From sequence record PQ015378.1: 64,000 bases of DNA. One strand, 5' to 3'. Of the stretch, positions 3,249 through 64,000 are shown piece by piece. The notes under the pieces were generated by a model that saw only the letters and a list, made by a program, of their open reading frames with translations, made no database searches and was not told the DNA's origin. Each line of letters begins with the position of its first letter. Position 1 is the first letter of the stretch. Made by a program: the position numbers and the translations under genes.

Positions 3249-3297
3249 CATAAAGCCTCCACCTTCGGGTGGAGGCCTACGCCTTATTTTTTTTTTT
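3249..3297. terminator. Bidirectional terminator at a convergent gene junction
   Basis: AAA-GCCTCCACC-TTCG-GGTGGAGGC followed by a long T tract; near-identical copy at 58751. Confidence 0.8.
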
Positions 3298-3616
3298 ACA
3301 TCTGGCGAGTCATGTTACGGACTTCTTTGTCCATATCACGTTTCAACTTGGATTGCTCGTCAATCCGTCTCAACATTTCAGACTCACCAACCTCAAGCAT
3401 GTACATGGCTTCATCGAACGGGAGTTCTTTGAATTCGTTCCATGAAATGCTCCACCGCTCTTTCACGTTGTATCGGTCGAACTTCCGCATAAGCGAACGT
3501 ACGGCACCGCCTTCAACGACGTCTTCTTTATCATAGAGACGCACAACGTCTAACGGATGTTTATGGTGATGGGCTGGACGGATCTGGTAATCTTCCAAGT
3601 AAGCCTCGCGCAGCAT
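3296..3616 (-). CDS. Small conserved protein, tail/baseplate assembly chaperone T- or T4 gp51-like; start uncertain
   Basis: WSISWNEFKELPFDE resembles the chaperone T/gp51 signature; frame is open for 21 further codons upstream of the ATG. Confidence 0.6.
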   Translation of the reverse strand: MLREAYLEDYQIRPAHHHKHPLDVVRLYDKEDVVEGGAVRSLMRKFDRYNVKERWSISWNEFKELPFDEAMYMLEVGESEMLRRIDEQSKLKRDMDKEVRNMTRQM

Positions 3617-3782
3617 GATTTCTGCTAACGCTGGCCTTATGGCACCGATCTCTTCAGTGAGTTGTTCCAGAGCTCCCCTCTAGGACGACCGCGCAGCCCG
3701 AAGCTGTACTGAGTCACATGTCCTAGGGGATCACTTAGGTCCACTGATAGACGAGTCATCTGTGGGTCTTTGTTGCTATGAC

Positions 3783-5426
3783 CTACTGGTTGACTTTCTG
3801 GCCCGCCAAGGTAAAAAATGTCGACACTACATCGATCGGGATCAGGTGGTCGAAACGTTCGTGGAACGTCTTGGCCATTGCGCTGTCACAGACCGGGCAG
3901 TTCCAGGATGGAATGGCTACCATCGCCAGGATCACTTCGTCGATGAACTCCAGTACAGTTGCTTCGAAAGCAACAGCGTACTTCTTATCCGACATGACAT
4001 CGGACAGGTAAGCATCGATGACTTCTTCATCTTCGGTCAGCAGGGTCTCTTCTGCATCTACCCCGTCTTCACGGGTGTAGATAGCATCTACCCAATGCGA
4101 ATACTGGCGAGCACCAGTGAGTGCACCAAGACGAGAGATGTAGGCGTTACGACCAGCATCACCCGGCGCTTCGTTGAACGAGCTGTGAGTGATGTCGACG
4201 ATACCATCGATCCAGCGGTTACCCGCATCACGACGTTCAGCGATCGAAGGCACACGCAGCCGAACACCTACGTTGTCGAACCATTTGATCGGCTTACGAC
4301 CCAGGGTTGTGTCCTGAGCGTATTGGTCCAGTTCTTCGTTACGCAGCTGACGGCTCCAGCGGAGACGCAACATGTCACGCTGGCGCTGGTTCAGTTGGGT
4401 AACATCGAACCAGGTCAGAGAGAACATATCCAGTTTCGCTTCTTCGACATGAGTACACTTCGAAGGGTCAGCGACACAGGCATGACGATAGTTGAAGCCA
4501 CCTGGATACATGGTGGTAGCCAGAGCGTGGTGCAAGAGGGGTTCATCGAGAGCTGAGAGACGGTGCTCGATGTCGCCAGGGGTAGTGGCGACCATGTTGG
4601 TGTAGGTGATACACTGCAGCGCCAGATCGGTCAACGCGTTGTTGTAGATAGCAATGCGGTTGGAGAAGCCTTGGCCTTTGGTTTCACGACCCAGACGAAC
4701 TGCGATGTTCTGCAGACGTTGGATCATGTTGGCGACTTCGGTGTTTGTCGGAGTACGCAAACGAACCCAGATACCCGTGTGAGGCATCGGGAACTCGTGT
4801 GTAGCGCCCATGCCCGACTTACGTGTCAGGAACGAGAGCATATCCGACTTGGATGGTTTGTCAGACAGTTTGATCTTCGGCCGAGAAGGGCCGATCTTCG
4901 AACCTTCGTGCATGAAGAACTGTCGCCAATCCGAACCTTCGCGTTCAGTTGCCCGACGTGGGGTGCCGTGTGTATCGGCGTGTTCGATGGCGTTCTGGAG
5001 AGTCTCCAGCCATTCCAGGGTTTGTTTGTCAGTGACGACTTCGCCACCTTCAATGCCTTGGAACAGGCCGCCGTGTTGGAGCAGGATCTCTTCGAAGGTC
5101 TCTGGGTTCTCGCGCATGAACGCGATTACCGCTACCGCCGCAGGAATCTTCTCGCCATCAACAGGACGCTCGATGGTGAAGTTGACTTTCTTCTGAGCTG
5201 GAGTGAATGGTTGAACTTCTTCTGTGGTGGTTGGAGCTTCGTCTTCTTCCTCAGTAGGAACAAAGGCAGGCTCAGTGATGGAAGCTACCGGTACTTCGGT
5301 AGCCTCCTGGAGTACGGGTTCTTCGACAGGGACTTCGTAAACCGGAGTCTCTACTTGGCCGAAATGAACGGCGAGTTCAGGATTGATCTCTTGCAGTTCT
5401 TCATCATCTTGAATGTGATCGGACAT
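3783..5426 (-). CDS. Conserved phiKZ-like protein, possible baseplate hub/tail assembly chaperone (T4 gp26-like)
   Basis: 547 aa from MSDHIQ; acidic N-terminus, FPMPHTGIWVRLR and CPVC motifs; syntenic with phiKZ gp77 region. Confidence 0.6.
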   Translation of the reverse strand: MSDHIQDDEELQEINPELAVHFGQVETPVYEVPVEEPVLQEATEVPVASITEPAFVPTEEEDEAPTTTEEVQPFTPAQKKVNFTIERPVDGEKIPAAVAVIAFMRENPETFEEILLQHGGLFQGIEGGEVVTDKQTLEWLETLQNAIEHADTHGTPRRATEREGSDWRQFFMHEGSKIGPSRPKIKLSDKPSKSDMLSFLTRKSGMGATHEFPMPHTGIWVRLRTPTNTEVANMIQRLQNIAVRLGRETKGQGFSNRIAIYNNALTDLALQCITYTNMVATTPGDIEHRLSALDEPLLHHALATTMYPGGFNYRHACVADPSKCTHVEEAKLDMFSLTWFDVTQLNQRQRDMLRLRWSRQLRNEELDQYAQDTTLGRKPIKWFDNVGVRLRVPSIAERRDAGNRWIDGIVDITHSSFNEAPGDAGRNAYISRLGALTGARQYSHWVDAIYTREDGVDAEETLLTEDEEVIDAYLSDVMSDKKYAVAFEATVLEFIDEVILAMVAIPSWNCPVCDSAMAKTFHERFDHLIPIDVVSTFFTLAGQKVNQ

Positions 5427-10085: not shown

Positions 10086-10116
10086 CATAAACGCCTCCCT
10101 TCGGGGAGGCTTTATG
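10086..10116 (+). terminator. CATAAA-hairpin-TTTATG element
   Basis: GCCTCCC-TTCG-GGGAGGC stem extended by CATAAA/TTTATG immediately after the stop. Confidence 0.75.
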
Positions 10117-31512: not shown

Positions 31513-31539
31513 GCGGGAGGCTTCGGCCTCCCTTTATTT
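31513..31539 (+). terminator. Intrinsic terminator
   Basis: GGGAGGC-TTCG-GCCTCCC-TTTATTT directly after the stop. Confidence 0.75.
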
Positions 31540-36544: not shown

Positions 36545-36574
36545 CATAAAGGCAGCCTTCGGGCTGCCTTTATG
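36545..36574 (+). terminator. CATAAA-hairpin-TTTATG element
   Basis: Perfect inverted repeat CATAAAGGCAGCC-TTCG-GGCTGCCTTTATG. Confidence 0.8.
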
Positions 36575-48814: not shown

Positions 48815-49038
48815 TGGAAATCATTGTCGGTTGTGCCCTAGTAGCAATAGGGCTACTGGGGTTAGGGCTGGGGTTGTTGGCTTATGTCAATCGTACCCCA
48901 AGCTGTAACTGTGGGGTTGAGTGGGAGGTCATCGACAAGATCGGTGTCTACTCCAAACGGCTCCAGATGAACGAAGCCATCATCTACGTTCGTCAGTGTC
49001 CACAATGCAAGCTCATCCACCAACAGAAGGTCATGTAA
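48814..49038 (+). CDS. Membrane-anchored Zn-ribbon protein
   Basis: N-terminal TM, CNCGVEW...CPQC; TGATG coupling. Confidence 0.65.
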   Translation: MEIIVGCALVAIGLLGLGLGLLAYVNRTPSCNCGVEWEVIDKIGVYSKRLQMNEAIIYVRQCPQCKLIHQQKVM

Positions 49039-49358
49039 TGATTACCCTCAACGCTTTCGGTCTGTCCCTGATTGTAATGCTGGTTGTTGCAATCTGGTTC
49101 GTGCTGACTCTGATCCACCTGATCAAGCTTCAGCGTGGTCTGGAGCATCACAAACTCCACAATGATCCACACATCTCGTGGTACATGAACTTCGGCTGCG
49201 TGTCGTCACTGGTCTTCAAAGTACTGGTGTTCGTGATCGCTTTCTGTGTGATGGTCGCAAATGATCCTTCCAGTCCTTCCAACAAGCTGAAGGAAGAGGT
49301 CAAGTATCACCAGATCGAAGAGAAGCTGACCATCATTCCGGTGGAGCCTAAGAAATGA
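49038..49358 (+). CDS. Two-TM membrane protein
   Basis: TAATG coupling; two hydrophobic segments. Confidence 0.65.
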   Translation: MITLNAFGLSLIVMLVVAIWFVLTLIHLIKLQRGLEHHKLHNDPHISWYMNFGCVSSLVFKVLVFVIAFCVMVANDPSSPSNKLKEEVKYHQIEEKLTIIPVEPKK

Positions 49359-49591
49359 CTGTAACCCTTTCCCCTGCAGCTCTGTGTTTGATCGCTGCTG
49401 GTATGTTTGGGTTCTTCATGTTCCTGGCAATGTACCACAGCTTGAAGCTGCGCCTGCTCGTGGATAAACACCACGATTTCATCCGTGTACCGACATTGCG
49501 ATACCACTTCATGTGGACAACAATGTTGGCTGTAATACCTCTAGGGATGATTGCAACAGCCTTCTGCTTCTGTGCTCTTCGTTACCTCTAG
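49355..49591 (+). CDS. Two-TM membrane protein
   Basis: ATGA coupling; two hydrophobic segments. Confidence 0.65.
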   Translation: MTVTLSPAALCLIAAGMFGFFMFLAMYHSLKLRLLVDKHHDFIRVPTLRYHFMWTTMLAVIPLGMIATAFCFCALRYL

Positions 49592-49672
49592 GAAGAAATA
49601 CTCCTCCCCCATACCTAATGTAGAGGTCACTGACTAAAAGCATCGGATGGGGGCTTTTTATCGTATTAATTA

Positions 49673-49706
49673 GGAGTATAGCTAAGGCTATACTCCATCC
49701 TTTTTC
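49673..49706 (+). terminator. Terminator-like hairpin GGAGTATAGC-TAAG-GCTATACTCC plus T run
   Basis: Perfect 10-bp stem followed by ATCCTTTTT. Confidence 0.6.
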
Positions 49707-49731
49707 TTATTCAACCACCAGGAGTTAACCC

Positions 49732-51183
49732 ATGTCCGTCGTACAAGTTCCAAAGACCCTGCCGAACAATGATGTTCAAGAAATGATGAAAGAACTCCGT
49801 AACTATCAGGAAGCTGGTAATTACATCACCGCTTACCTCATCGGACCTCGTGGCGAACAGTTCGTTTACTACAGTCGTGAGTTCCATGGTCTTACTGACC
49901 ACATGCTCAAGATCTCGGATTCATTCCGAATGTTCGAAGGACGTATGCCAGTCGATTACTACGAAGAGTTCATCCTGGGAATCATTGTCCCAGCAGCGCT
50001 GCGTTTCAAAGACAGGAACTACGCCTCGGGATACGAGCTTAACGAATTCCGTTTGCTCATCAAAGCTACCATCGGTGGTGACATCCGGTTCGAGTACAAC
50101 TTGCAAGACACCCGCGAGATGATCACGGGTAAGAACAAGCTGGTCGAACCAATCCAAGTACCATTCGACATCGACACTGGTACCTGGAATCACATTACCA
50201 AACGCATGGGTTCCAAAGCCAAGGACTACGTGTCCATCGGTTTCTATGTGGATGGTCAGCACTACATCATGCAAGACTGGAACCACTTCCGTGCAACTAC
50301 CCAAACCAATGAAGCAACCCGTGTATGGCGTAAGTCCCATCCAAATTGGGTCGACTTCATGCAAGACTGGGTAACCCCACGAGTGCACGAGTTTGTTGCT
50401 GGTCTGAATCGTGGTGGTCATAAAGGACCGCAGTCGATCCGCATGAACCTGGGTGTGTGCGGCACTAACGCGATCATCTCTACCTTCGAGCTGTCACTAC
50501 CGGGCTCCCGTATTGATGTGGGTGATGTTGCTGCCATGGTAGATCTGCGCCAAGCGGTGGGATTAAATACCGGTGTCGACCATGGTTATGTACTGGCTTA
50601 TTATATCCACCAGGATGGTAGCCGACATATCCTGGGTCAAGCAGGCATGATTGACATGACTGGTACCGATGCATCCACTCACCCGAAAGCACTCGTATTC
50701 AATACCGAGTGTTCGCGTTGGGCTGAACATCTGGATGGCATCCGCAACTCGTGCCTGAACCATGCCGTAAGTCGTTGCCAAACCTACCGTCTCCAGAACA
50801 TCCGCATCTGCTTCATCGATGCCATCACCTCAGCGGGTGTACCAGGCTGTCCTGATATCATCATCGACACCAATGCCAAAAAGGCAATGCCAAAGCCTGA
50901 CGATTATGTGAAGGCCGATTCCAACGAAGGAGCCAAAGAGCTCCTGCTCGGACAGATCATCGAACAGATGAATGAGCAAAAAGGTAAGGAGCTTCGCAAG
51001 CTCGCTTATGGTCAGGGTCTGGTTGTTCACGTGACCTACAAAGCCGGTGCACCAATGCCGACCTCTGACATCCTGTTGTACCTCAGTGACAAGCTTCGCG
51101 AGAATGGCTGGTTCATGCATTTCGATCCAGAACCATCCGAAACTCGACCACTGGTGTTCATGCTGTACCCTATCTCCAAGTAA
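49732..51183 (+). CDS. Hypothetical multidomain protein
   Basis: 483 aa; AGGAG SD. Confidence 0.75.
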   Translation: MSVVQVPKTLPNNDVQEMMKELRNYQEAGNYITAYLIGPRGEQFVYYSREFHGLTDHMLKISDSFRMFEGRMPVDYYEEFILGIIVPAALRFKDRNYASGYELNEFRLLIKATIGGDIRFEYNLQDTREMITGKNKLVEPIQVPFDIDTGTWNHITKRMGSKAKDYVSIGFYVDGQHYIMQDWNHFRATTQTNEATRVWRKSHPNWVDFMQDWVTPRVHEFVAGLNRGGHKGPQSIRMNLGVCGTNAIISTFELSLPGSRIDVGDVAAMVDLRQAVGLNTGVDHGYVLAYYIHQDGSRHILGQAGMIDMTGTDASTHPKALVFNTECSRWAEHLDGIRNSCLNHAVSRCQTYRLQNIRICFIDAITSAGVPGCPDIIIDTNAKKAMPKPDDYVKADSNEGAKELLLGQIIEQMNEQKGKELRKLAYGQGLVVHVTYKAGAPMPTSDILLYLSDKLRENGWFMHFDPEPSETRPLVFMLYPISK

Positions 51184-51200
51184 CCAAAAGGAAAACTGCA

Positions 51201-51674
51201 ATGCTTCTGACTAACTGGATTCGTGGCCTGGGCAAAGAACGTGCGCGTGATGTTGTCATGGCAGCTGAAATCTACAAGTTGCAAACTGCGGCTCGTACCC
51301 TGCGGCACATGCTGCTGTCGAACGAGTACAAAGGCGGCTTCATGTGCTGTGACCTCATGATGTCCACTACTGTTCCAGTGGAAGATGCTCAGCTGACCTG
51401 CATGGTCATTGCTGACAATATCAACCGCTCCGGTACTCTGGTCGGCTACCTTCTGCAGAACGCGAAGCACTACCCAAATGCTGAAGGTGGTTACGACATG
51501 CCATACGCGTACCACCGCCCGGTTCATGAAGACTACAACTTCATGGCCGACCACATCATGCGTACTGGTGACCTGGAAAACGAGATCGCTCGTATCCTGC
51601 TGTCTAACTGGTACTGGAAACTGATCGCACGTCTGGAAAAGCGTGCAACTGAAATGTTGGAGTGCAGCAAATGA
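51201..51674 (+). CDS. Hypothetical protein (paralogue of 51671)
   Basis: ILLSNWYW motif. Confidence 0.7.
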   Translation: MLLTNWIRGLGKERARDVVMAAEIYKLQTAARTLRHMLLSNEYKGGFMCCDLMMSTTVPVEDAQLTCMVIADNINRSGTLVGYLLQNAKHYPNAEGGYDMPYAYHRPVHEDYNFMADHIMRTGDLENEIARILLSNWYWKLIARLEKRATEMLECSK

Positions 51675-52174
51675 TCGACGTAATCAAAAACAAGCTTATC
51701 GAACTGGGCCTCATCAAGTCCGAGTTCCGCAAGAACATTGAGCAGGCAATGCATGATCTGGAGCTGGCTGCTGATACCATGCAGCACTTGATCATGTCGG
51801 GTCGTTACGCTGGGCGTCAGATGTGCCTGGTCGCTGTACGTGCTGCTCGTGACGGCGACATCACGCGTGAAGCCTACCACGCCGTGCTGGATCACATGAC
51901 CCAACGCATCGGCCATAACGAAAGCCTGCATCCATGGCTGCGCGGCCGTGTAGAGAAAGGCACCCACGAACATGCAGAGTTGATGCGCACTGGTCAGCTC
52001 AGCATCATCAAAGTCGGTCGTCAGACCATGGCCCAGCTGGACAAAGATCCAGAACTTAGCCTGGACTGGCTCGACACTCGAATCATTCTCACCAACTGGT
52101 ACTGGCGTGAAATCCGCGCAATGCGTGACATGGCAGCTAGCTACCGGAGGGACCTGAAAACCATGAACTGGTAA
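51671..52174 (+). CDS. Hypothetical protein (paralogue of 51201)
   Basis: IILTNWYW motif; ATGA coupling. Confidence 0.7.
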   Translation: MIDVIKNKLIELGLIKSEFRKNIEQAMHDLELAADTMQHLIMSGRYAGRQMCLVAVRAARDGDITREAYHAVLDHMTQRIGHNESLHPWLRGRVEKGTHEHAELMRTGQLSIIKVGRQTMAQLDKDPELSLDWLDTRIILTNWYWREIRAMRDMAASYRRDLKTMNW

Positions 52175-52183
52175 AGGAGTTCT

Positions 52184-52723
52184 ATGCACCCACTCGTCGC
52201 CCAGGCAGAGACCTTCTGCCTTGCCGCACATGCGGCTGTAGGCCAACTGCGCAAGTACACCAATAAAGATTACCACACCCATCCATTCGCGGTGCGTGAT
52301 CGCCTGAAAGCTGCACTGGGTGATCGCTGTACTCCGGAGATGGAGTGTGGTGCTCTGTTGCACGATGTTATCGAGGACACGTCTGTCAAACGGCGTATCA
52401 TCCTCGATACCTTCGGGTTTGAAGTTCTGCGTATCGTCATGGGGCTTTCCGATAGCTCCACCAAAGATGACGGTAGCCGTAAACATCGGAAGGCTATCGA
52501 CCGGGCTCACATTGCTAACCAGCCGTGGGATGTCCAAACCATCAAGGCCTGTGACCTCATCGACAACATGGAATCGATCGAGAAACATGACCTGGGTTTC
52601 GCTAAGGTATACGTACCTGAGAAGCGACTGATCCTGGATGTGCTGGTTCGAGCCGAACCCAAGCTGTTGGAACGTTGCTGGCAATTGGTAACCGACTTCG
52701 AGAAGAAGCACGGGACTGAATAA
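52184..52723 (+). CDS. HD-domain hydrolase, SpoT/Mesh1-like (p)ppGpp hydrolase family
   Basis: GQLRKY...YHTHP, ALLHDVIEDT and IKACDLIDN motifs. Confidence 0.85.
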   Translation: MHPLVAQAETFCLAAHAAVGQLRKYTNKDYHTHPFAVRDRLKAALGDRCTPEMECGALLHDVIEDTSVKRRIILDTFGFEVLRIVMGLSDSSTKDDGSRKHRKAIDRAHIANQPWDVQTIKACDLIDNMESIEKHDLGFAKVYVPEKRLILDVLVRAEPKLLERCWQLVTDFEKKHGTE

Positions 52724-52726
52724 ACT

Positions 52727-52751
52727 GCCTCCCTTCGGGGAGGCTTTATTT
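52727..52751 (+). terminator. Intrinsic terminator
   Basis: GCCTCCC-TTCG-GGGAGGC-TTTATTT. Confidence 0.8.
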
Positions 52752-52769
52752 CGCATCAAGGAGATAATC

Positions 52770-53480
52770 GTGGGTACTCACATCAACACTCGTTTCCAGG
52801 CTCTCGTTAAACAACCGGACGGGACCATGCAGTTCGAAGACATCTCGTCCAATTACGACGAGCGTCAACACTACAACCTGTTCGCCTGGTTGAACGATGT
52901 CCGTAACTACAACGGTATCACACCGATCGCAGATACCTGGCGTGACTGCCCTCCTGATCTCCTGCACCTGGATTCGTATGATCGGCCAGGCCATTGGTTA
53001 CTGGGTTCCGAGATCATGGACGCTGTTGATCGTATCCATCCGGTAACTGAATCGGGCATGGTCCATACCTGGAACAAGCCGAAGTTCAATGAAGAACCCG
53101 ATGGTTACTCCCGTGGTTCTAACGTCCACGATCCCCTGACTGCCAAAGACGACGTTATCCGCCGTGATACCGGCTACGCGCAACGGGCGTGGGAGGAGTG
53201 CTGTAACTACAAGCGCATCGACCACCGTTGCAGTGGTGGTAAGTGGGTATGGAAGAACGGCTGTTCTACCTGGACTGGTCCAAAGAACAAACGTGCTGCA
53301 CCAGAGAAGTACCGCAAGAAGATGCGAAAGTACGCTGAACGCGTCGGTCGCTTCGAATACCGTCACACCTGGGTGATCTCTCCTAGCCAGCGCCGGGAAG
53401 AGTTCGCTTATTTCATCAAGGAAATCGCCTCGCTCATGAAAGAGCATGGTGAGATCCGTATGCTCATGAACTTCGGTTGA
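52770..53480 (+). CDS. Conserved phage hypothetical protein
   Basis: MGTHI...YNLFAWLNDVRN...ITPI...PPD pattern seen in many phage proteins. Confidence 0.7.
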   Translation: MGTHINTRFQALVKQPDGTMQFEDISSNYDERQHYNLFAWLNDVRNYNGITPIADTWRDCPPDLLHLDSYDRPGHWLLGSEIMDAVDRIHPVTESGMVHTWNKPKFNEEPDGYSRGSNVHDPLTAKDDVIRRDTGYAQRAWEECCNYKRIDHRCSGGKWVWKNGCSTWTGPKNKRAAPEKYRKKMRKYAERVGRFEYRHTWVISPSQRREEFAYFIKEIASLMKEHGEIRMLMNFG

Positions 53481-53490
53481 GGATAACCAC

Positions 53491-53883
53491 ATGCGTAAAC
53501 GTAATAACAATACCATCCAGTCGATCATCATTCGTCGTAAGAATGACCCACTGGTAAAACTCCATACCGAATTCTGGTATGGTTCGTGCTTCCAGGAACG
53601 TGGTTCGTTCTTCGTGTCGGAAGAACCGTACTTCCGTCCGTGGCGCGACAGCATCATCAGCCGTAGCGGTGCATGGTGGTTCAAAGGCCTTGATGCTAAA
53701 GGCCAGACCATCGAGTTCTCCCTCGGTGACATGGGCGTACCTGGCTACGCCTATGACGATCGCCCTAACCTCTTCTGCCTGACGGAGGAAGAAGGTGATA
53801 TCAGGGCGGAGGAGCACCGACAGTGGTTGGATCGTGTTCAGGAGGAAGATCCGAACTACGGCCTGTACGACGACTACTGGTGA
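53491..53883 (+). CDS. Hypothetical protein
   Basis: GAGGA SD. Confidence 0.65.
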   Translation: MRKRNNNTIQSIIIRRKNDPLVKLHTEFWYGSCFQERGSFFVSEEPYFRPWRDSIISRSGAWWFKGLDAKGQTIEFSLGDMGVPGYAYDDRPNLFCLTEEEGDIRAEEHRQWLDRVQEEDPNYGLYDDYW

Positions 53884-53890
53884 GTTGTAA

Positions 53891-53916
53891 CCCTCCCTTC
53901 GGGGAGGGCTTTATTT
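53891..53916 (+). terminator. Intrinsic terminator
   Basis: CCCTCCC-TTCG-GGGAGGG-CTTTATTT. Confidence 0.75.
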
Positions 53917-53945
53917 CCTGTATTGATTTAACTTTGTTTAAGAAC

Positions 53946-53963
53946 TACATTACCATCGTGACT
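53946..53963 (+). promoter_or_regulatory. Early promoter variant TACATTACCATCGTGACT
   Basis: Degenerate copy of the repeated motif, preceded by TTTAAG, just after a terminator. Confidence 0.55.
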
Positions 53964-53981
53964 AACATAAGGAATAAAACC

Positions 53982-54509
53982 ATGTATCTGAATCAAACTG
54001 AAAAGTTCTACAAGATCTACTCCGAGTCCCTGGGCTGGTACAACGGCACCAAGTTCACGAAGGATCCTTTCGTCGTTGCGTTCGACATTCCGGCTTATCC
54101 CAAGAAGAAAGCGGATGACATGATGTTCGCTCTCTATCGTGGCCTGCCATACGAACTGGTGCATAACGGCAACCAGATCATCCTCGGCAAGTTCGATAAC
54201 TGGTGCGCTGTGGACCAGGTCAACCAAGAATGGCGTGAAGTGGAAGTTGAGCTGCAATACGCTCCAGGCTACCGCATCCTGCCGTTCGGTACGGAAGAGA
54301 TCGTAATCCAGATCTCTACCAAGTCTGTTCACAACTACTACGACGTGCACGTCGCCGGTAACAAGATCGTGAAGGTTATCCAATACTTCTTTGGTGAGAA
54401 AACCGAAGTGGATACCCTTATGTTCGAGATCGACAACCCAGTCGGTAAGTTCTTCAAGCTCACTGATCGTAAAGCCAACCTCTCCGCTCGCATCAACAAG
54501 GAAGCTTAA
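53982..54509 (+). CDS. Hypothetical protein
   Basis: AAGGA SD before MYLNQTEK. Confidence 0.7.
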   Translation: MYLNQTEKFYKIYSESLGWYNGTKFTKDPFVVAFDIPAYPKKKADDMMFALYRGLPYELVHNGNQIILGKFDNWCAVDQVNQEWREVEVELQYAPGYRILPFGTEEIVIQISTKSVHNYYDVHVAGNKIVKVIQYFFGEKTEVDTLMFEIDNPVGKFFKLTDRKANLSARINKEA

Positions 54510-54511
54510 TC

Positions 54512-55000
54512 ATGGATACCAAGACCCACAAGTTCAACCACCGCATCCTGGATCACCTCAACACCGGCTTCAACGTGTACAGCCCAGCGATCCAGTGGGC
54601 TATCAAGAATACCCTCAACGAGCGTGGTGATGAAGTCCTGATCATTCCGATGATCAACCCAGCGATGCTCAGCTTCGAATACACCATCAACTACAAAGAT
54701 GCCACCGTGACCTGCGAGATGTTCATGGCAGGTATCGAAGGTGCAGTGATGTCGAACACCAAGAAGCTGCCTTGCACCGAAGGCGGCCCTGTGGTAATCG
54801 AGTCAGTGATGGGTACCGTACGTCGCATCGAAGAAGAGCGTCCTGAACAAGCTCGCATCGGTGCAGCTGCTGGTGTGGTGCAGGTCCTCGAAGACCTGTG
54901 CTGCCAACACCTGCAATACCAGATCGACAAGATCAAGAACCGTGCCTACGAGAACAACCTCTGGGCCGATCGTTATCAGCTGACCTACAAGGAGGACTGA
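54512..55000 (+). CDS. Hypothetical protein
   Basis: Strong codon bias; AAGGA SD. Confidence 0.7.
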   Translation: MDTKTHKFNHRILDHLNTGFNVYSPAIQWAIKNTLNERGDEVLIIPMINPAMLSFEYTINYKDATVTCEMFMAGIEGAVMSNTKKLPCTEGGPVVIESVMGTVRRIEEERPEQARIGAAAGVVQVLEDLCCQHLQYQIDKIKNRAYENNLWADRYQLTYKED

Positions 55001-55001
55001 A

Positions 55002-55286
55002 ATGTCCCACAAGCTCGGCAAGCGCAAGTTCCGTCAGATCTACGGCGACATCACCCGTCAGGAAGGTGTCGACCAGATGGTCGATGCCACCAACCAGTAC
55101 TGGTCGAACATCAACAACGCCGCGCTCGGCTTCCACTACAAAGGTGAGAAGTTCCGCAACTTCAAGAAGGGTACGGCCAAGTGGAAACTCGGAGAGAAGC
55201 TGGAGCGTTATCTGGATCTCGCACTGAACTTCCCGCGTCTGCCCAAGAACCAGAAACTCGTCGCCCTCAAAATCGTAGGTGAGTAA
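55002..55286 (+). CDS. Small basic protein (paralogue of 55289)
   Basis: MSHKLGKRKFRQIYG start; GGAGG SD. Confidence 0.7.
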   Translation: MSHKLGKRKFRQIYGDITRQEGVDQMVDATNQYWSNINNAALGFHYKGEKFRNFKKGTAKWKLGEKLERYLDLALNFPRLPKNQKLVALKIVGE

Positions 55287-55288
55287 CC

Positions 55289-55681
55289 ATGTGCCATAAA
55301 CTCGGAAAGAAAAAGCTCAAGCAGATCTTCGGCAACCAATACGGTATCGACCTGCGTCGTGACAAAGAAGGCAAGATCCGCCGTAACCGTTGGGGTCGTC
55401 GTATGGGTACCAACTACATGTCCAAGATCCTGGCGGCGTGGCAGGGCCTGGATCGTAAGTTCATGCCCGACCAGAACAACAATGGTTACAAACTGACCAA
55501 AGCCAAACGCAAGCAATTGGTTAAGCTGGACAACCTGTACATCTACGGTCAGGCTCACCAGCGTCGCTTCACCTCCACCGAGCGTAAGAAGCGTATCGTC
55601 CACCTGGAACGCAACAACGTCTGCCGGGTACTCCGCAACGTAGACATGGCAATCCCACCACATCAACAGGAATCCGTATAA
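55289..55681 (+). CDS. Small basic protein (paralogue of 55002)
   Basis: MCHKLGKKKLKQIFG start. Confidence 0.7.
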   Translation: MCHKLGKKKLKQIFGNQYGIDLRRDKEGKIRRNRWGRRMGTNYMSKILAAWQGLDRKFMPDQNNNGYKLTKAKRKQLVKLDNLYIYGQAHQRRFTSTERKKRIVHLERNNVCRVLRNVDMAIPPHQQESV

Positions 55682-56212
55682 ATGAAAGCTATCAAGAACA
55701 TTCGCGTACAGCGTCCCGAGAACACCATCACCTTCATGCCAGCCTGGATGTGTGGCATGCTGCAGGACAACTCCTGCGTGATCTCGATCATCTACGAGGG
55801 TGAACACCGCCCAACCTTCGGCCCCCACATGACCGTGCTGGAACTCACTGATGAAGGCTATGGCCTGACCCCGGAGATGTTCCACAGGGCTCTGCGCTTC
55901 ACCAAAGAAAACATCGGCCGTAACATCAACATCCACTGCCATCAGGGCCGTATCCGTTCCAAGACCCTGGCGCACCAGCTGGCTACGGTTCTGCCCCAGT
56001 ACAAAGTGTTGGAATGGAAACCGGACGGCGTGCTGTTCGAATCCAACCCGGAACCCAAACACCGCTTCCGTTTCCCCAAGGGTTTCATCCGCAAGCACCT
56101 GTTCGGTGACAAGCAACCCTACATCGTTCGTAGCCCTATCATCACTGACAAGGTGATGCGCCCGGACTGTGGCGATGCCATCGTCATGTTCGAAGACTCC
56201 GACAAGATCTAA
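55682..56212 (+). CDS. Protein-tyrosine/dual-specificity phosphatase-like protein
   Basis: IHCHQGRIRS fits the HCx5R(S/T) P-loop. Confidence 0.7.
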   Translation: MKAIKNIRVQRPENTITFMPAWMCGMLQDNSCVISIIYEGEHRPTFGPHMTVLELTDEGYGLTPEMFHRALRFTKENIGRNINIHCHQGRIRSKTLAHQLATVLPQYKVLEWKPDGVLFESNPEPKHRFRFPKGFIRKHLFGDKQPYIVRSPIITDKVMRPDCGDAIVMFEDSDKI

Positions 56213-61521: not shown

Positions 61522-63747
61522 ATGAATCTCGATTCACTGTTCAAACACAACGCACAGAAGCAGTACACCCGCTTCTCCATGGAAGACTTCCTGAAAGACC
61601 TGACCCAGGAACAAAACTACGCCGACAGCCTGCTGGCTAAAGGTAAAGGCCTGGTCGAACACATCTCGCAAGAAGACTTCGGCGACATCACCGAAAGCGG
61701 CCGTGCTCAAGCTGGTCAGCTGTACGGTGACCTGGGTGCGCTGATGACCAAGTTCGGTTTCGAACACTTCAAGCAAGACTCGGGCAAAGCCTACATCACC
61801 GAAAACCAACAGCGCGCTGCTGCCATCGCCGCGATTGCCTGCTCTGACCCAGAAGGCTACAAGAAAGCCCTGCGTCTGGTTGCCAAGGAAGTCGCTTCGA
61901 ACGAAGAACACGTTCACAACGTTCGTCACGAGTTCGCTGGTCCTGCTGGTTCCCTGCAAGTATTCCAAGACCACCTGGGTCTGGAAAACTACAACGAAAA
62001 ATCTCAGCGCGACTTCCGCGTTGTTACCGTCGGCTACAACCTGGAAGCTTCCCGCCAGGACGAGTTCGCCGAGCGTCTGTACCCAACTACTGTCATCAAC
62101 CCAGTTGAAGGTGGTGTTGTTCAGGTACTGCCATACATCGCCGTCATGAAAGACGTCTACCACGCTGTCAGCGGTCAGAAACTGGCCAACGAAGAAGTGA
62201 ACATGGTAGAAGCCTACCGTGACCCGTCGATCCTGGACGACAACTGCACCGACCTGATCCCTGCAGTCGATCCAGATGGCACCAACCTGAAGTTCTTCGT
62301 CGACCCGGCTGTCGTGCCTCACCACCAGGTGACCAACGAGCAAAACATGACCGTCACCACCGGTCCTCTGAAGCCAGGTGTCAAGATCGACCTGATGGGC
62401 AACTCGAACGCCAACCTGCTGATCAACAAAGGCATGCTGGACATCTCTGACACCATCGACCCAAGCGGCCGCCTGAAAGCGCTGTACGTCAAGTTCGATG
62501 GCAAGATCGTTCGCTTCGTCGTCGACCGTCTGCCTACCGCTGTGTTCCAGCCTGGTCTGATCGGCGACACCCGTATCGCCAAGCTCGACTTCATCTCCGA
62601 AGACCTGGTCGTCGGCGCTGACACCAAAGCCATCGACGGCTCGGTATCGGCTCAGATGCAAGAACTGACCAACCGCAAGTGGACTGCTCGTCTGAGCGTC
62701 AGCTTCAACGGTCACGTCAGCACCTCGCGTGGTGATGCTCGCTACGGCGTCAACGGTATCGAAATCGACCGTATCGTCGATGAAGATCGCAAGCTGATCT
62801 CGATCGAAGAAGGTGACGGTAAAGACATCGTCGACGCAGTCGGTGCTCTGGAAGTCGTTGGTTACGACCTCGACCTGAAGTTCACCAACACCAACCGTCG
62901 TCAGCGCGGCCACCTGCTGCAAACTCGTGCGATCCAGTTCCGTCACCCGATCCCGATGCACGCTCCGGTCACCCTGCCAATGTCCACCATGGACGGCGAA
63001 ACTGGCCCAGGCGACGTCGTGAAGGCCCTGACCGTCAACACCAACATCCGCAACTCGAACAACGCTGTCAAGCGTCTGCTGAACTACCTGGCTCAGCTGA
63101 AAGAAGTTGTTGGTAACGGTTACGACCGTCCGAAGTTCGGCGCTGTCGAAGGTGCTCTGAGCATCATGATGCGTCCGACCTACCGTGAAGGTACCCTGCA
63201 CCTGCCTGACCACATCGACACCCTGAAGTCTCAGGATCGCTGGCAGGACGTCTGCAGCACCATCCTCAACTTCGCCAAAGGTATCCTGTTCCCAGCATAC
63301 CGTGAGTCGAACATCGAGGCAGCCTTCCGTGTGATCTCGGGCAACCAAGACGAGAAGCCAATGTTCATCTTCGCTACCGACAAAGAAATCGGTAACTACC
63401 TGATGACTCAAGGCGACGACCGCACCCTGGGCGCAATCCTGGAGTACGACCTGGTCACTACCAACAACGAACTGTTCGACGGCAAGCTGGTCATCGTACC
63501 AACTCGCAAGAACCCAACCGAAAACGACATCCTGTCCTTCGGTCAGTTCTTCTACGTGTCGACTGTCATCGCCGACCTGCCGATCACCCGTGGTGGTCAG
63601 CAAGTGACCCGTGAAATCGCGGCCGTTCCGTTCAACCTGCACGTGAACAACATTCCGTTCGCTATCAACCTGACCATCACTGGTCTGGAAGAAGTGATGG
63701 GTCAATCGCAGTGGAACAAGAAACTGTTCGAAGCGATCAAGGCCTGA
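61522..63747 (+). CDS. Major capsid protein precursor (phiKZ gp120-like)
   Basis: 741 aa; extreme codon bias; propeptide with SME, SQE and GLE sites; synteny after DnaB and gp119. Confidence 0.9.
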   Translation: MNLDSLFKHNAQKQYTRFSMEDFLKDLTQEQNYADSLLAKGKGLVEHISQEDFGDITESGRAQAGQLYGDLGALMTKFGFEHFKQDSGKAYITENQQRAAAIAAIACSDPEGYKKALRLVAKEVASNEEHVHNVRHEFAGPAGSLQVFQDHLGLENYNEKSQRDFRVVTVGYNLEASRQDEFAERLYPTTVINPVEGGVVQVLPYIAVMKDVYHAVSGQKLANEEVNMVEAYRDPSILDDNCTDLIPAVDPDGTNLKFFVDPAVVPHHQVTNEQNMTVTTGPLKPGVKIDLMGNSNANLLINKGMLDISDTIDPSGRLKALYVKFDGKIVRFVVDRLPTAVFQPGLIGDTRIAKLDFISEDLVVGADTKAIDGSVSAQMQELTNRKWTARLSVSFNGHVSTSRGDARYGVNGIEIDRIVDEDRKLISIEEGDGKDIVDAVGALEVVGYDLDLKFTNTNRRQRGHLLQTRAIQFRHPIPMHAPVTLPMSTMDGETGPGDVVKALTVNTNIRNSNNAVKRLLNYLAQLKEVVGNGYDRPKFGAVEGALSIMMRPTYREGTLHLPDHIDTLKSQDRWQDVCSTILNFAKGILFPAYRESNIEAAFRVISGNQDEKPMFIFATDKEIGNYLMTQGDDRTLGAILEYDLVTTNNELFDGKLVIVPTRKNPTENDILSFGQFFYVSTVIADLPITRGGQQVTREIAAVPFNLHVNNIPFAINLTITGLEEVMGQSQWNKKLFEAIKA

Positions 63748-63834
63748 AAGGGTCCGGGCAACGGCCGTCGTCAAGAAGACGGAACCTACCGGAAACTTGA
63801 GGACGGTACCACCCAGCGGTACCTAGAAGGTTAA
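63748..63834 (+). other. In-frame extension after the MCP UGA (candidate readthrough segment)
   Basis: KGPGNGRRQEDGTYRKLEDGTTQRYLEG-TAA, followed immediately by the terminator. Confidence 0.5.
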
Positions 63835-63866
63835 CATGACGCGGGAGCTTCGGCTCCCGCTTTATG
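63835..63866 (+). terminator. Terminator GCGGGAGC-TTCG-GCTCCCGC-TTTATG
   Basis: Perfect 8-bp stem with UUCG loop. Confidence 0.8.
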
Positions 63867-63895
63867 TCGTCTTGGACTCCATGAAATCTCAGATC

Positions 63896-63903
63896 TATAT
63901 TAC
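63896..63903 (+). promoter_or_regulatory. Early promoter core TATATTAC
   Basis: Exact core motif after the terminator, about 40 nt before ATG 63943. Confidence 0.55.
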
Positions 63904-63942
63904 AGTAAGGATAGATACACCCCTTTTAGATTTGAGGTCCAC

Positions 63943-64000
63943 ATGTGCTACTTCACCGATTTTAAATCGAAGCTCCATGACAAACATAAAGGAGACTTCT
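63943..64000 (+). CDS. Start of a hypothetical gene, truncated by the window end
   Basis: GAGGT SD, then MCYFTDFKSK; open to the window end. Confidence 0.4.
   Translation, partial: MCYFTDFKSKLHDKHKGDF

Follow-up and report, generated by a model that had tools for sequence, protein, structure and literature searches.

A conserved in-frame tail behind the capsid gene of phiKZ-like jumbo phages, probably translated by readthrough of a TGA stop codon

Does the major capsid protein (MCP) gene of the jumbo phage Pseudomonas phage RVTF4 really end at its stop codon, or does a small share of capsid subunits carry a C-terminal tail encoded beyond it? The window analysed here is a stretch of 64,000 nucleotides from record PQ015378.1, in which the MCP gene ends in TGA-A and is followed in the same frame by 28 open codons, a TAA, and, 6 nt later, a terminator hairpin. 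The original prediction proposed that reading through this TGA yields a minor, extended MCP. The sequence observation on which it rested is correct in every statement, and its interpretation is supported by comparison with relatives, although translation past the TGA has not been observed directly by anyone, as far as the searchable literature shows. The elements of the locus are as follows.

61522–63747 (+), MCP gene, 741 codons plus TGA, a homologue of phiKZ gp120
63745–63748 (+), candidate leaky stop, TGA followed by A
63748–63834 (+), in-frame extension of 28 codons (63748–63831) with its TAA stop (63832–34)
63754–63792 (+), nested RNA stems starting 6 nt after the TGA, the outer CCGG 63754–57 with 63789–92 and the inner CCGTC 63765–69 with GACGG 63778–82
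63766–63783 (+), first R-x-x-E-D-G motif, extension residues 7–12
63790–63807 (+), second R-x-x-E-D-G motif, extension residues 15–20
63805–63823 (+), second hairpin inside the extension, GGTACC 63805–10 with 63818–23
63817–63828 (+), C-terminal R-Y-L-E segment, extension residues 24–27
63841–63866 (+), intrinsic terminator of the capsid transcript, with an 8-bp GC-rich stem and a TTCG loop (hairpin 63841–63860) and a TTTATG tail, separated from the TAA by CATGAC

The gene is annotated as a major head protein in PQ015378.1, it matches gp120 in PDB entry 8y6v at E=0 over residues 3–736, and the Pfam family PF25620 (PhiKZ_MCP) is present on all homologues. The contrast with other genes that the original prediction had drawn is also real, since strong terminators of the same family lie 2–9 nt after the TAA of long ORFs in the window, whereas the MCP has TGA and a gap of 93 nt. 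The codon adaptation of the tail is 0.42, far below the lowest value for any 28-codon segment of the MCP (0.605), as expected for a rarely translated stretch. The caveat attached to the original prediction, that an open run of 28 codons is not rare in itself, is right as well: within this one genome, 19 of 58 long ORFs are followed by 26 or more open codons. The significance of the tail therefore comes only from the comparison with relatives, and that comparison is strong.

A conserved in-frame peptide with synonymous variation after the MCP stop of related phages had been named in advance as the decisive test, and 46 distinct loci of related capsid genes were compared for this purpose. Of these, 27 carry a homologous in-frame tail of 24–30 codons, and all 27 end the capsid gene in TGA; 17 lack the tail, and all 17 end in TAA. 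The tail-bearing loci include phiKZ and PhiPA3 and span Phikzvirus, Miltoncavirus, Pawinskivirus, Phabiovirus, Tepukevirus, 201phi2-1, Noxifervirus, and metagenomic lineages, with MCP identity among them falling to about 47–50%. In the same genomes the stop of the downstream gene (TAG 9, TAA 9, TGA 4) and that of the tail itself (TAA 17, TGA 6, TAG 4) drift freely. On a neighbour-joining (NJ) tree, which has no support values, the distribution of loci without the tail requires at least four or five separate losses, each paired with TAA; one of them is a close relative of RVTF4 (locus L033) with a single deletion of about 20 codons. The tail is thus dispensable in nature. Burkholderia phage FLC9, with TGA-A and 18 open codons but no recognizable motif, was left unclassified.

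The tail shows the signature of protein-coding sequence. Its frame is the only one of six that is open in all relatives, the other five carrying stops, and its indels are whole codons only. In an alignment of 23 sequences, Arg7, Glu10, and Gly12 of the first motif are invariant in all 23 and are written with 5, 2, and 4 different codons, whereas in the second motif Gly20 is invariant and Arg15 and Glu18 are present in at least 90% of sequences, these being written with 4, 5, and 2 codons. The codons for Arg include both CGN and AGR. Basic and acidic columns of the C-terminal R-Y-L-E segment are kept in most relatives. A pN/pS comparison over all pairs was weak, because synonymous sites are saturated, and ungapped tails, being misaligned, gave no valid MCP control. 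Over 11 independent sister pairs, however, pN/pS is 0.52 in this frame, against 0.82 and 1.21 in the shifted frames, and third-position differences are enriched (p=8e-5). Selection is only moderate, with half of the columns varying freely, yet the peptide is recognizable even where blastn finds no DNA similarity. The terminator lies downstream of the extension in every relative inspected, so that the extension is on the mRNA.

Searches with the tail alone revealed no relationship to known families. Pfam gave no hit at E up to 10, so that the RVTF4 tail itself has no match to Big_2, and PHROGs gave only weak hits (the C terminus of phrog_2935 at E=0.083 and phrog_15072 at E=0.13), a lead that was abandoned because the neighbouring gp119 homologue belongs to another PHROG. 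A profile search against the PDB gave only noise. No second copy of the motif was found by a regular-expression scan of the window or by an HMM scan of the six-frame translation of the whole RVTF4 genome. Among 120 MCP homologues from a set of 5.8 billion proteins, none has the tail fused through a sense codon, so there is no natural version that is always on.

In two further lineages, an Ig-like (Big_2) domain sits in frame after the capsid stop. In three loci, L071, L087, and L088, TGA is followed by an in-frame Big_2 ORF (36.7 bits in L071, cut-off 22.8). In L075, Big_2 (30.1 bits) starts at residue 2 after the MCP stop and ends in the same double motif, with the same R-Y-L-E ending, and its first possible start codon would truncate the domain; this case, however, has TAA rather than TGA and rests on a single metagenomic contig.

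The best explanation, to which we assign a probability of roughly 0.75, is that the TGA ending the capsid gene is a programmed leaky stop. In this view, most ribosomes terminate there and make the normal protein of 741 residues, whereas a minority insert an amino acid at UGA, most simply Trp from a near-cognate tRNA-Trp(CCA), and translate 28 more codons. The resulting minor isoform would have a short tail with a Gly/Pro-rich start, two R-x-x-E-D-G units, and an R-Y-L-E end, for which a small β-meander with D-G turns is a plausible fold, although no structure prediction was made for the tail, alone or together with the MCP arm. UGA is the leakiest stop in bacteria, and a 3′ A favours its reading by tRNA-Trp, though neither point was tested here. 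The C-terminal arm of the MCP lies at the hexamer centre and contacts the exterior protein gp244 in phiKZ (PMC11297242; PMC13250141), the contact with gp244 being made in pentamers. The tail would therefore emerge at capsomer centres, most likely on the outside, as a covalently attached, sub-stoichiometric decoration whose copy number is set by termination efficiency, with an Ig-like domain in the same place in some relatives. What the sequences themselves establish is the anatomy of the locus, the conservation of the peptide as protein, the strict association of TGA with the tail and of TAA with its absence, and the lack of a conserved start codon; that readthrough occurs, which residue is inserted, what share of subunits is extended, where the tail lies on the capsid, and what it does are our inferences.

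Some observations do not favour this reading or leave parts of it without support. Neither proteomic nor ribosome-profiling data were examined here, and literature searches found no report of a peptide, a ribosome footprint, or extra cryo-EM density past the stop; the phiKZ model 8y6v ends at residue 747 of the annotated protein. The base after the TGA is not uniform (A in 19, G in 7, and C in 1 of the 27 loci), and no strongly conserved nucleotide context around the stop was found. As this base is nevertheless a purine in 26 of 27 loci, and stems start 6 nt after the stop in the RVTF4/D6/Psa21-like clade only, a conserved stimulatory context or structure is neither established nor excluded, and a stimulatory role for the nested stem is unproven. 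Recoding by a phage suppressor tRNA is not indicated, since ARAGORN found 10 tRNAs in the whole RVTF4 genome, none with a UCA anticodon, although a tRNA-Trp(CCA) is present.

Among the alternatives, all of them unlikely, a separate small protein started by non-canonical initiation or by re-initiation after the TGA survives slightly better than the others. Purine-rich, Shine–Dalgarno-like runs follow the stop in most relatives, and in L071, L087, and L088 the Big_2 ORF has an ATG at its third codon and is treated as a gene by gene callers, so that for ORFs of this type the absence of an independent start could be neither affirmed nor denied. On the other hand, no ATG, GTG, or TTG is conserved at or near the beginning of the tail, in-frame ATG or TTG occurring only in some clades, at residue 9, after the conserved Gly and Arg columns. 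An independent gene need not be in frame with the MCP, yet all 27 are, nor would it need TGA upstream, and in L075 the first possible start would cut into the Big_2 domain.

It is also improbable that the stretch is a non-coding 3′-UTR element, for example one stabilizing the transcript or serving 3′-end processing, with the open frame as a by-product. The region folds better than shuffled sequence (z=−4.5 with the terminator included, about −2 without it), each clade has some stable fold, and the nested stems are conserved in the 12 RVTF4-like sequences, where several four-fold degenerate sites inside the stems never vary. However, random synonymous recodings of the same peptide fold nearly as well (mean z about −0.5), so that most of the structure follows from the peptide. 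The pairs of the nested stems are invariant or changed on one side only, and covariation is almost nil, a single pair of the second hairpin, itself specific to this clade, showing a change on both sides. No structure is shared across clades, the alifold energy for all 26 sequences being −0.4 kcal/mol, and Rfam gave no relevant match. An RNA element does not explain whole-codon indels, CGN/AGR exchange, the third-position excess, or the link to TGA. Indels or stops in relatives, with only RNA structure kept, had been specified beforehand as the outcome that would overturn the readthrough proposal; the opposite is seen, as the peptide is kept and the structure is not shared between clades.

Just as improbable is a relic, in which an old C-terminal segment cut off by a nonsense mutation is now decaying untranslated, or a mere chance open run. 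Open runs of this length are common in this genome, the tail is lost in many lineages, its codon usage is poor, and no fused version was found. A relic, however, would have picked up stops and frameshifts over a divergence that took MCP identity below 50% and saturated synonymous sites (pS up to 0.87), whereas the frame, the motif, and the TGA are kept in 27 of 27 loci and the stop is TAA where the tail is really gone. Decoding of the UGA as selenocysteine by the host SelB system is the least likely, since, although many pseudomonads have the Sec machinery and a stem-loop starts 6 nt after the UGA in RVTF4, the hairpin differs in position and sequence between clades and is absent as a common structure, no RNA family matched, the sequence after the TGA in the Big_2 variants is unrelated, and no selenoprotein role for a capsid tail is known.

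Minor extended capsid proteins are known from other phages. In the ssRNA coliphage Qbeta, the coat protein gene ends in UGA, a few per cent of ribosomes read through, and the extended A1 protein is built into the virion; its extension is a folded domain of about 200 residues needed for infection, whereas here a 300-kb dsDNA jumbo phage carries a tail of 24–30 residues that is lost repeatedly in nature. Likeness to A1 was not tested by sequence, and none came back from the family or structure searches. In T7 (10B), T3, Lactobacillus A2, and Listeria A118/A500/PSA, one capsid gene also gives two products, the minor one with a C-terminal extension, which in T3 and A2 is an Ig-like domain, and both are built into the capsid (PMC5009743). 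The Big_2 variants L071 and L075 parallel these Ig-like cases, but recoding there is a −1 or +1 frameshift, whereas here the extension is in the zero frame behind a stop codon, no slippery site is involved, and the common extension is a short repeat peptide rather than a domain. T4 Hoc, present as one copy per hexamer, and Ig-like decorations of phage capsids (Fraser et al. 2006, cited in PMC5009743) are likewise non-essential, surface-exposed modules at capsomer centres; Hoc, however, is a separate protein that binds after assembly, whereas here the module would be covalently part of a fraction of MCP subunits, at a location that is inferred and not observed. Finally, the capsid proteins of the distant chimalliviruses Xoo-sp14, Deimos-Minion, and pVa-21 have low-complexity tails extending the same protein end, which shows that the capsomer centre tolerates appendages. 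Those tails are part of the main ORF and so are on every subunit, end in TAA, are Gly/Thr/Pro-rich, and are not homologous to the motif tail.

We can speculate, with about even odds, that nucleus-forming jumbo phages of the phiKZ lineage use leaky termination of the capsid gene as a dosing device, which puts a fixed small number of covalent appendages at hexamer centres, a β-turn peptide of 24–30 residues in most lineages and an Ig-like domain in some. In the RVTF4/Psa21/D6 clade the dose may be tuned by the phage-encoded tRNA-Trp(CCA), whose D-stem carries the U11–A24 pair that is linked to better UGA reading. This would be the first programmed readthrough described for the capsid protein of a tailed dsDNA phage, and it would be present in the main model jumbo phages.

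Phages phiKZ, PhiPA3, and 201phi2-1 are the model systems for jumbo-phage capsids and the phage nucleus, and their capsids have been solved at near-atomic resolution; even so, this additional capsid protein isoform appears in no annotation, structure, or paper that we could find. If it is real, it adds a virion component that is invisible to icosahedral averaging and to proteomics run against annotated proteins, and it gives a natural display site at the capsomer centre. It would also extend recoding by readthrough from ssRNA phages to large dsDNA phages and supply a clean evolutionary rule for finding further cases, with TGA where a tail follows and TAA where none does.

RVTF4 (PQ015378.1, 302.5 kb) is a phiKZ-like, nucleus-forming jumbo phage. 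Bases 63000-64000 of the window match its record at 100% identity, with window base 63000 corresponding to record base 187000. The elements at the 3' end of the capsid gene are arranged as follows.

61522-63747 (+), ORF annotated as 'major head protein', aligning over residues 3-736 with phiKZ gp120 of PDB entry 8y6v at E=0
63745-47 (+), TGA stop of this gene, followed by A
63832-34 (+), TAA stop that ends the 28 codons left open in the same frame after the TGA
63841-63866, 8-bp GC hairpin with a TTCG loop and a TTTATG tail, starting six bases after the TAA
63884-63903, AT-rich block just after the capsid terminator
63943, ATG of the next gene
61534-63774 (-), antisense ORF of 746 codons

The observation made in the original prediction, that the capsid gene ends in TGA and is continued by an open reading frame, is confirmed. 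The nested stems described there are also present, together with a second hairpin (GGTACC/GGTACC), and the contrast claimed between this gene and others is real. In the window, strong terminators follow the TAA of long ORFs after 2-9 nt, whereas the capsid gene has TGA and a 93-nt gap. These terminators (769-786, 10093-10110, 31515-31532, 36551-36568, 52727-52744, 63841-63860 and others) form a near-identical family comprising a GC stem, a TTCG-type loop, and a TTTATG tail; several are bidirectional, and the constant TTTATG tail may have a function of its own. The codon adaptation of the extension, measured against the capsid gene itself, is 0.42, below the minimum of 0.605 found for any 28-codon window of the gene. 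Taken alone, however, the open frame means little, since 19 of the 58 long ORFs in the window have 26 or more open codons after their stops (stop usage TAA 29, TGA 19, TAG 10). The antisense ORF shadows the whole capsid gene and starts inside the extension, and is probably a by-product of the codon bias of the gene. The AT-rich block is invariant in RVTF4, D6, and Psa21, and its core, ATCTATATTAC, recurs at the same place in PhiPA3, Phabio, and HPP-Temi; it is probably a phage promoter for the next gene.

The 3' end of the capsid gene and its downstream DNA were collected from GenBank phages (D6, Psa21, PhiPA3, Phabio, HPP-Temi, U1B (Phikzvirus), and Noxifer), from IMG/VR, and from metagenome contigs, yielding 46 distinct loci that fall into three groups. 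Twenty-seven of them carry an in-frame tail of 24-30 codons with the same motif, and all 27 end the capsid gene in TGA (TGA-A 19, TGA-G 7, TGA-C 1). Seventeen have no such tail, and all 17 end in TAA. The remaining two carry a long extension. Stops elsewhere in the same genomes drift freely, with TAG 9, TAA 9, and TGA 4 for the next gene, and TAA 17, TGA 6, and TAG 4 for the second stop, at the end of the tail. In three close relatives of D6 (loci L007, L008, and L009), a different gene follows the capsid gene about 120-200 nt after its stop, in place of the usual gp121-like gene, which may reflect an insertion. In HPP-Temi (locus L006, 3192-3335), the GenBank record annotates a 47-codon 'hypothetical protein' that overlaps the capsid stop and tail in another frame; given the conserved zero-frame tail, this call is probably spurious. 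Several capsid homologues (proteins P0002 and P0010-P0012) are named 'virulence-associated protein VapD' by JGI, but all of them carry PF25620 PhiKZ_MCP, so that the name is a mis-annotation.

In a neighbor-joining tree built from 220 capsid residues, the tail occurs in four places, namely the phiKZ/PhiPA3/201phi2-1/Phabio/RVTF4 clade, the Noxifer clade, locus L070, and, as the end of a longer extension, the outlying metagenomic locus L075. On this tree, which has no support values, the absence of the tail needs at least four or five separate losses, every one of them paired with TAA. One of these losses lies inside the RVTF4-like clade, where locus L033, at 91% capsid identity, has a single deletion of about 20 codons of the tail and has TAA.

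A conserved in-frame peptide with synonymous variation in related phages had been proposed in advance as the comparative test of readthrough, and its outcome supports that interpretation. The capsid frame is free of stops in every tail, while each of the other five frames has stops in most sequences, and all length differences are whole codons. In the peptide alignment, Arg7, Glu10, Gly12, and Gly20 (RVTF4 numbering) are invariant, whereas Arg15 and Glu18 are present in at least 90% of sequences. These columns are written with 2-5 different codons each, and Arg is written with both CGN and AGR codons. Over 11 phylogenetically independent sister pairs, pN/pS is 0.52 in the capsid frame, whereas the same alignment read in the two shifted frames gives 0.82 and 1.21. 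Selection is moderate, not strong, and about half of the columns vary freely. Differences fall on third positions in 37% of cases, against 24% at positions 1 and 2 (p=8e-5). The peptide is recognizable in PhiPA3, Phabio, HPP-Temi, 201phi2-1, phiKZ-type, and Noxifer-type phages, where blastn finds no DNA similarity to the RVTF4 stretch.

Although the stretch folds better than shuffled sequence, random synonymous recodings of the same peptides fold almost as well, with a mean z of about -0.5, and an alignment fold of all 26 distinct tails finds essentially nothing in common (-0.4 kcal/mol). Within the 12 RVTF4-like sequences, the nested stems and the second hairpin are kept and several four-fold degenerate sites inside the stems never vary, but only one pair changes on both sides, and other clades have different folds. 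No Rfam family matches. We conclude that RNA structure cannot explain the conservation of the stretch. In the RVTF4-like clade, a stem that starts 6 nt after the stop may still act on top of the coding function; such spacing would, by inference, put it at the mRNA entrance of the ribosome.

No start codon is conserved at or near the beginning of the tail, which is always in the zero frame and always behind TGA. The whole RVTF4 genome has ten tRNA genes (Thr, Cys, Ser x2, Leu x2, Trp, Asn, Pro, and Asp; RVTF4 record 48865-56077, in the stretches L089 48865-49295 and L090 1375-6077), none of them annotated in the GenBank record and none with an anticodon cognate to UGA. The tRNA-Trp(CCA) has a normal 5-bp anticodon stem and a U11-A24 pair in the D stem; A24 is the change that makes E. 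coli tRNA-Trp a better UGA reader. This tRNA, for which no comparison with the host tRNA was made, may raise UGA reading in its clade, but since among the relatives it is shared only with Psa21 and D6, it cannot be a general requirement. The hairpin that a selenocysteine mechanism would need is not conserved. The simplest mechanism is therefore low-level reading of UGA by tRNA-Trp.

The two loci with long extensions differ in their architecture. In L075 (3160-3450), the capsid ORF ends in TAA and is followed in frame by 95 open codons that hold a Big_2 Ig-like domain (30.1 bits, cut-off 22.8), starting at residue 2, and end in the same double motif. The first possible start codon would cut into the domain, and there is no usable start codon; how a TAA would be passed is unexplained, and the case rests on a single contig. 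In locus L071 (3157-3771), and in seven further contigs that carry the same capsid protein (shown for L087 and L088, both 3266-3880), TGA-A is followed by an in-frame ORF of 201-203 codons with Big_2 (36.7 bits). This ORF has an ATG at its third codon, so that it could be either a readthrough domain or a separate decoration gene. In turn, the capsid proteins of the distant chimalliviruses Xoo-sp14, Deimos-Minion, and pVa-21 (loci L028, L029, and L030) carry Gly/Thr/Pro-rich low-complexity C-terminal tails inside the main ORF and end in TAA. Many metagenomic homologues end in acidic or Pro-rich linkers, with Pro very often as the last residue. None of 120 capsid homologues in the large protein collection searched has the motif tail fused by a sense codon.

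In phiKZ, the C-terminal arms (residues 728-747) of the six subunits form a six-helix bundle with a pore of about 9 Å at the center of each hexamer, whereas in pentamers the arm reaches between copies of gp244 (PMC11297242), which lies on the exterior surface (PMC13250141). A tail continuing from that end would therefore emerge at capsomer centers, probably outside. With T=27 there are about 1,600 subunits, and a readthrough of 1-3% would then give, by inference, some tens of tails per capsid. The alternation of basic, aromatic, and acidic residues between D-G turns suggests a small β-meander, although the tail was not modeled. It has no match in Pfam or the PDB and only weak matches in PHROGs, and it occurs only once in the genome.

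The analysis shows the arrangement of the stop and tail and the conservation of the latter as a peptide, whereas its translation, the share of subunits that carry it, the residue inserted at the stop, and its role are unproven. Full-text literature searches, as well as the phiKZ capsid, atlas, Grad-seq, TnSeq, and proteomics papers, gave no mention of readthrough of gp120 or its homologues, although most subscription journals were outside this search and a prior description cannot be excluded. In function, the arrangement would work like the Qbeta A1 readthrough coat protein, from which it differs in virus type, in the size of the extension, and in being dispensable. It would also work like the frameshift-extended capsid proteins of T7, T3, A2, A118/A500, and PSA, some of which add Ig-like domains (PMC5009743), but the recoding mechanism is different. 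The feature is of high interest because it sits unnoticed in the best-studied jumbo phages.
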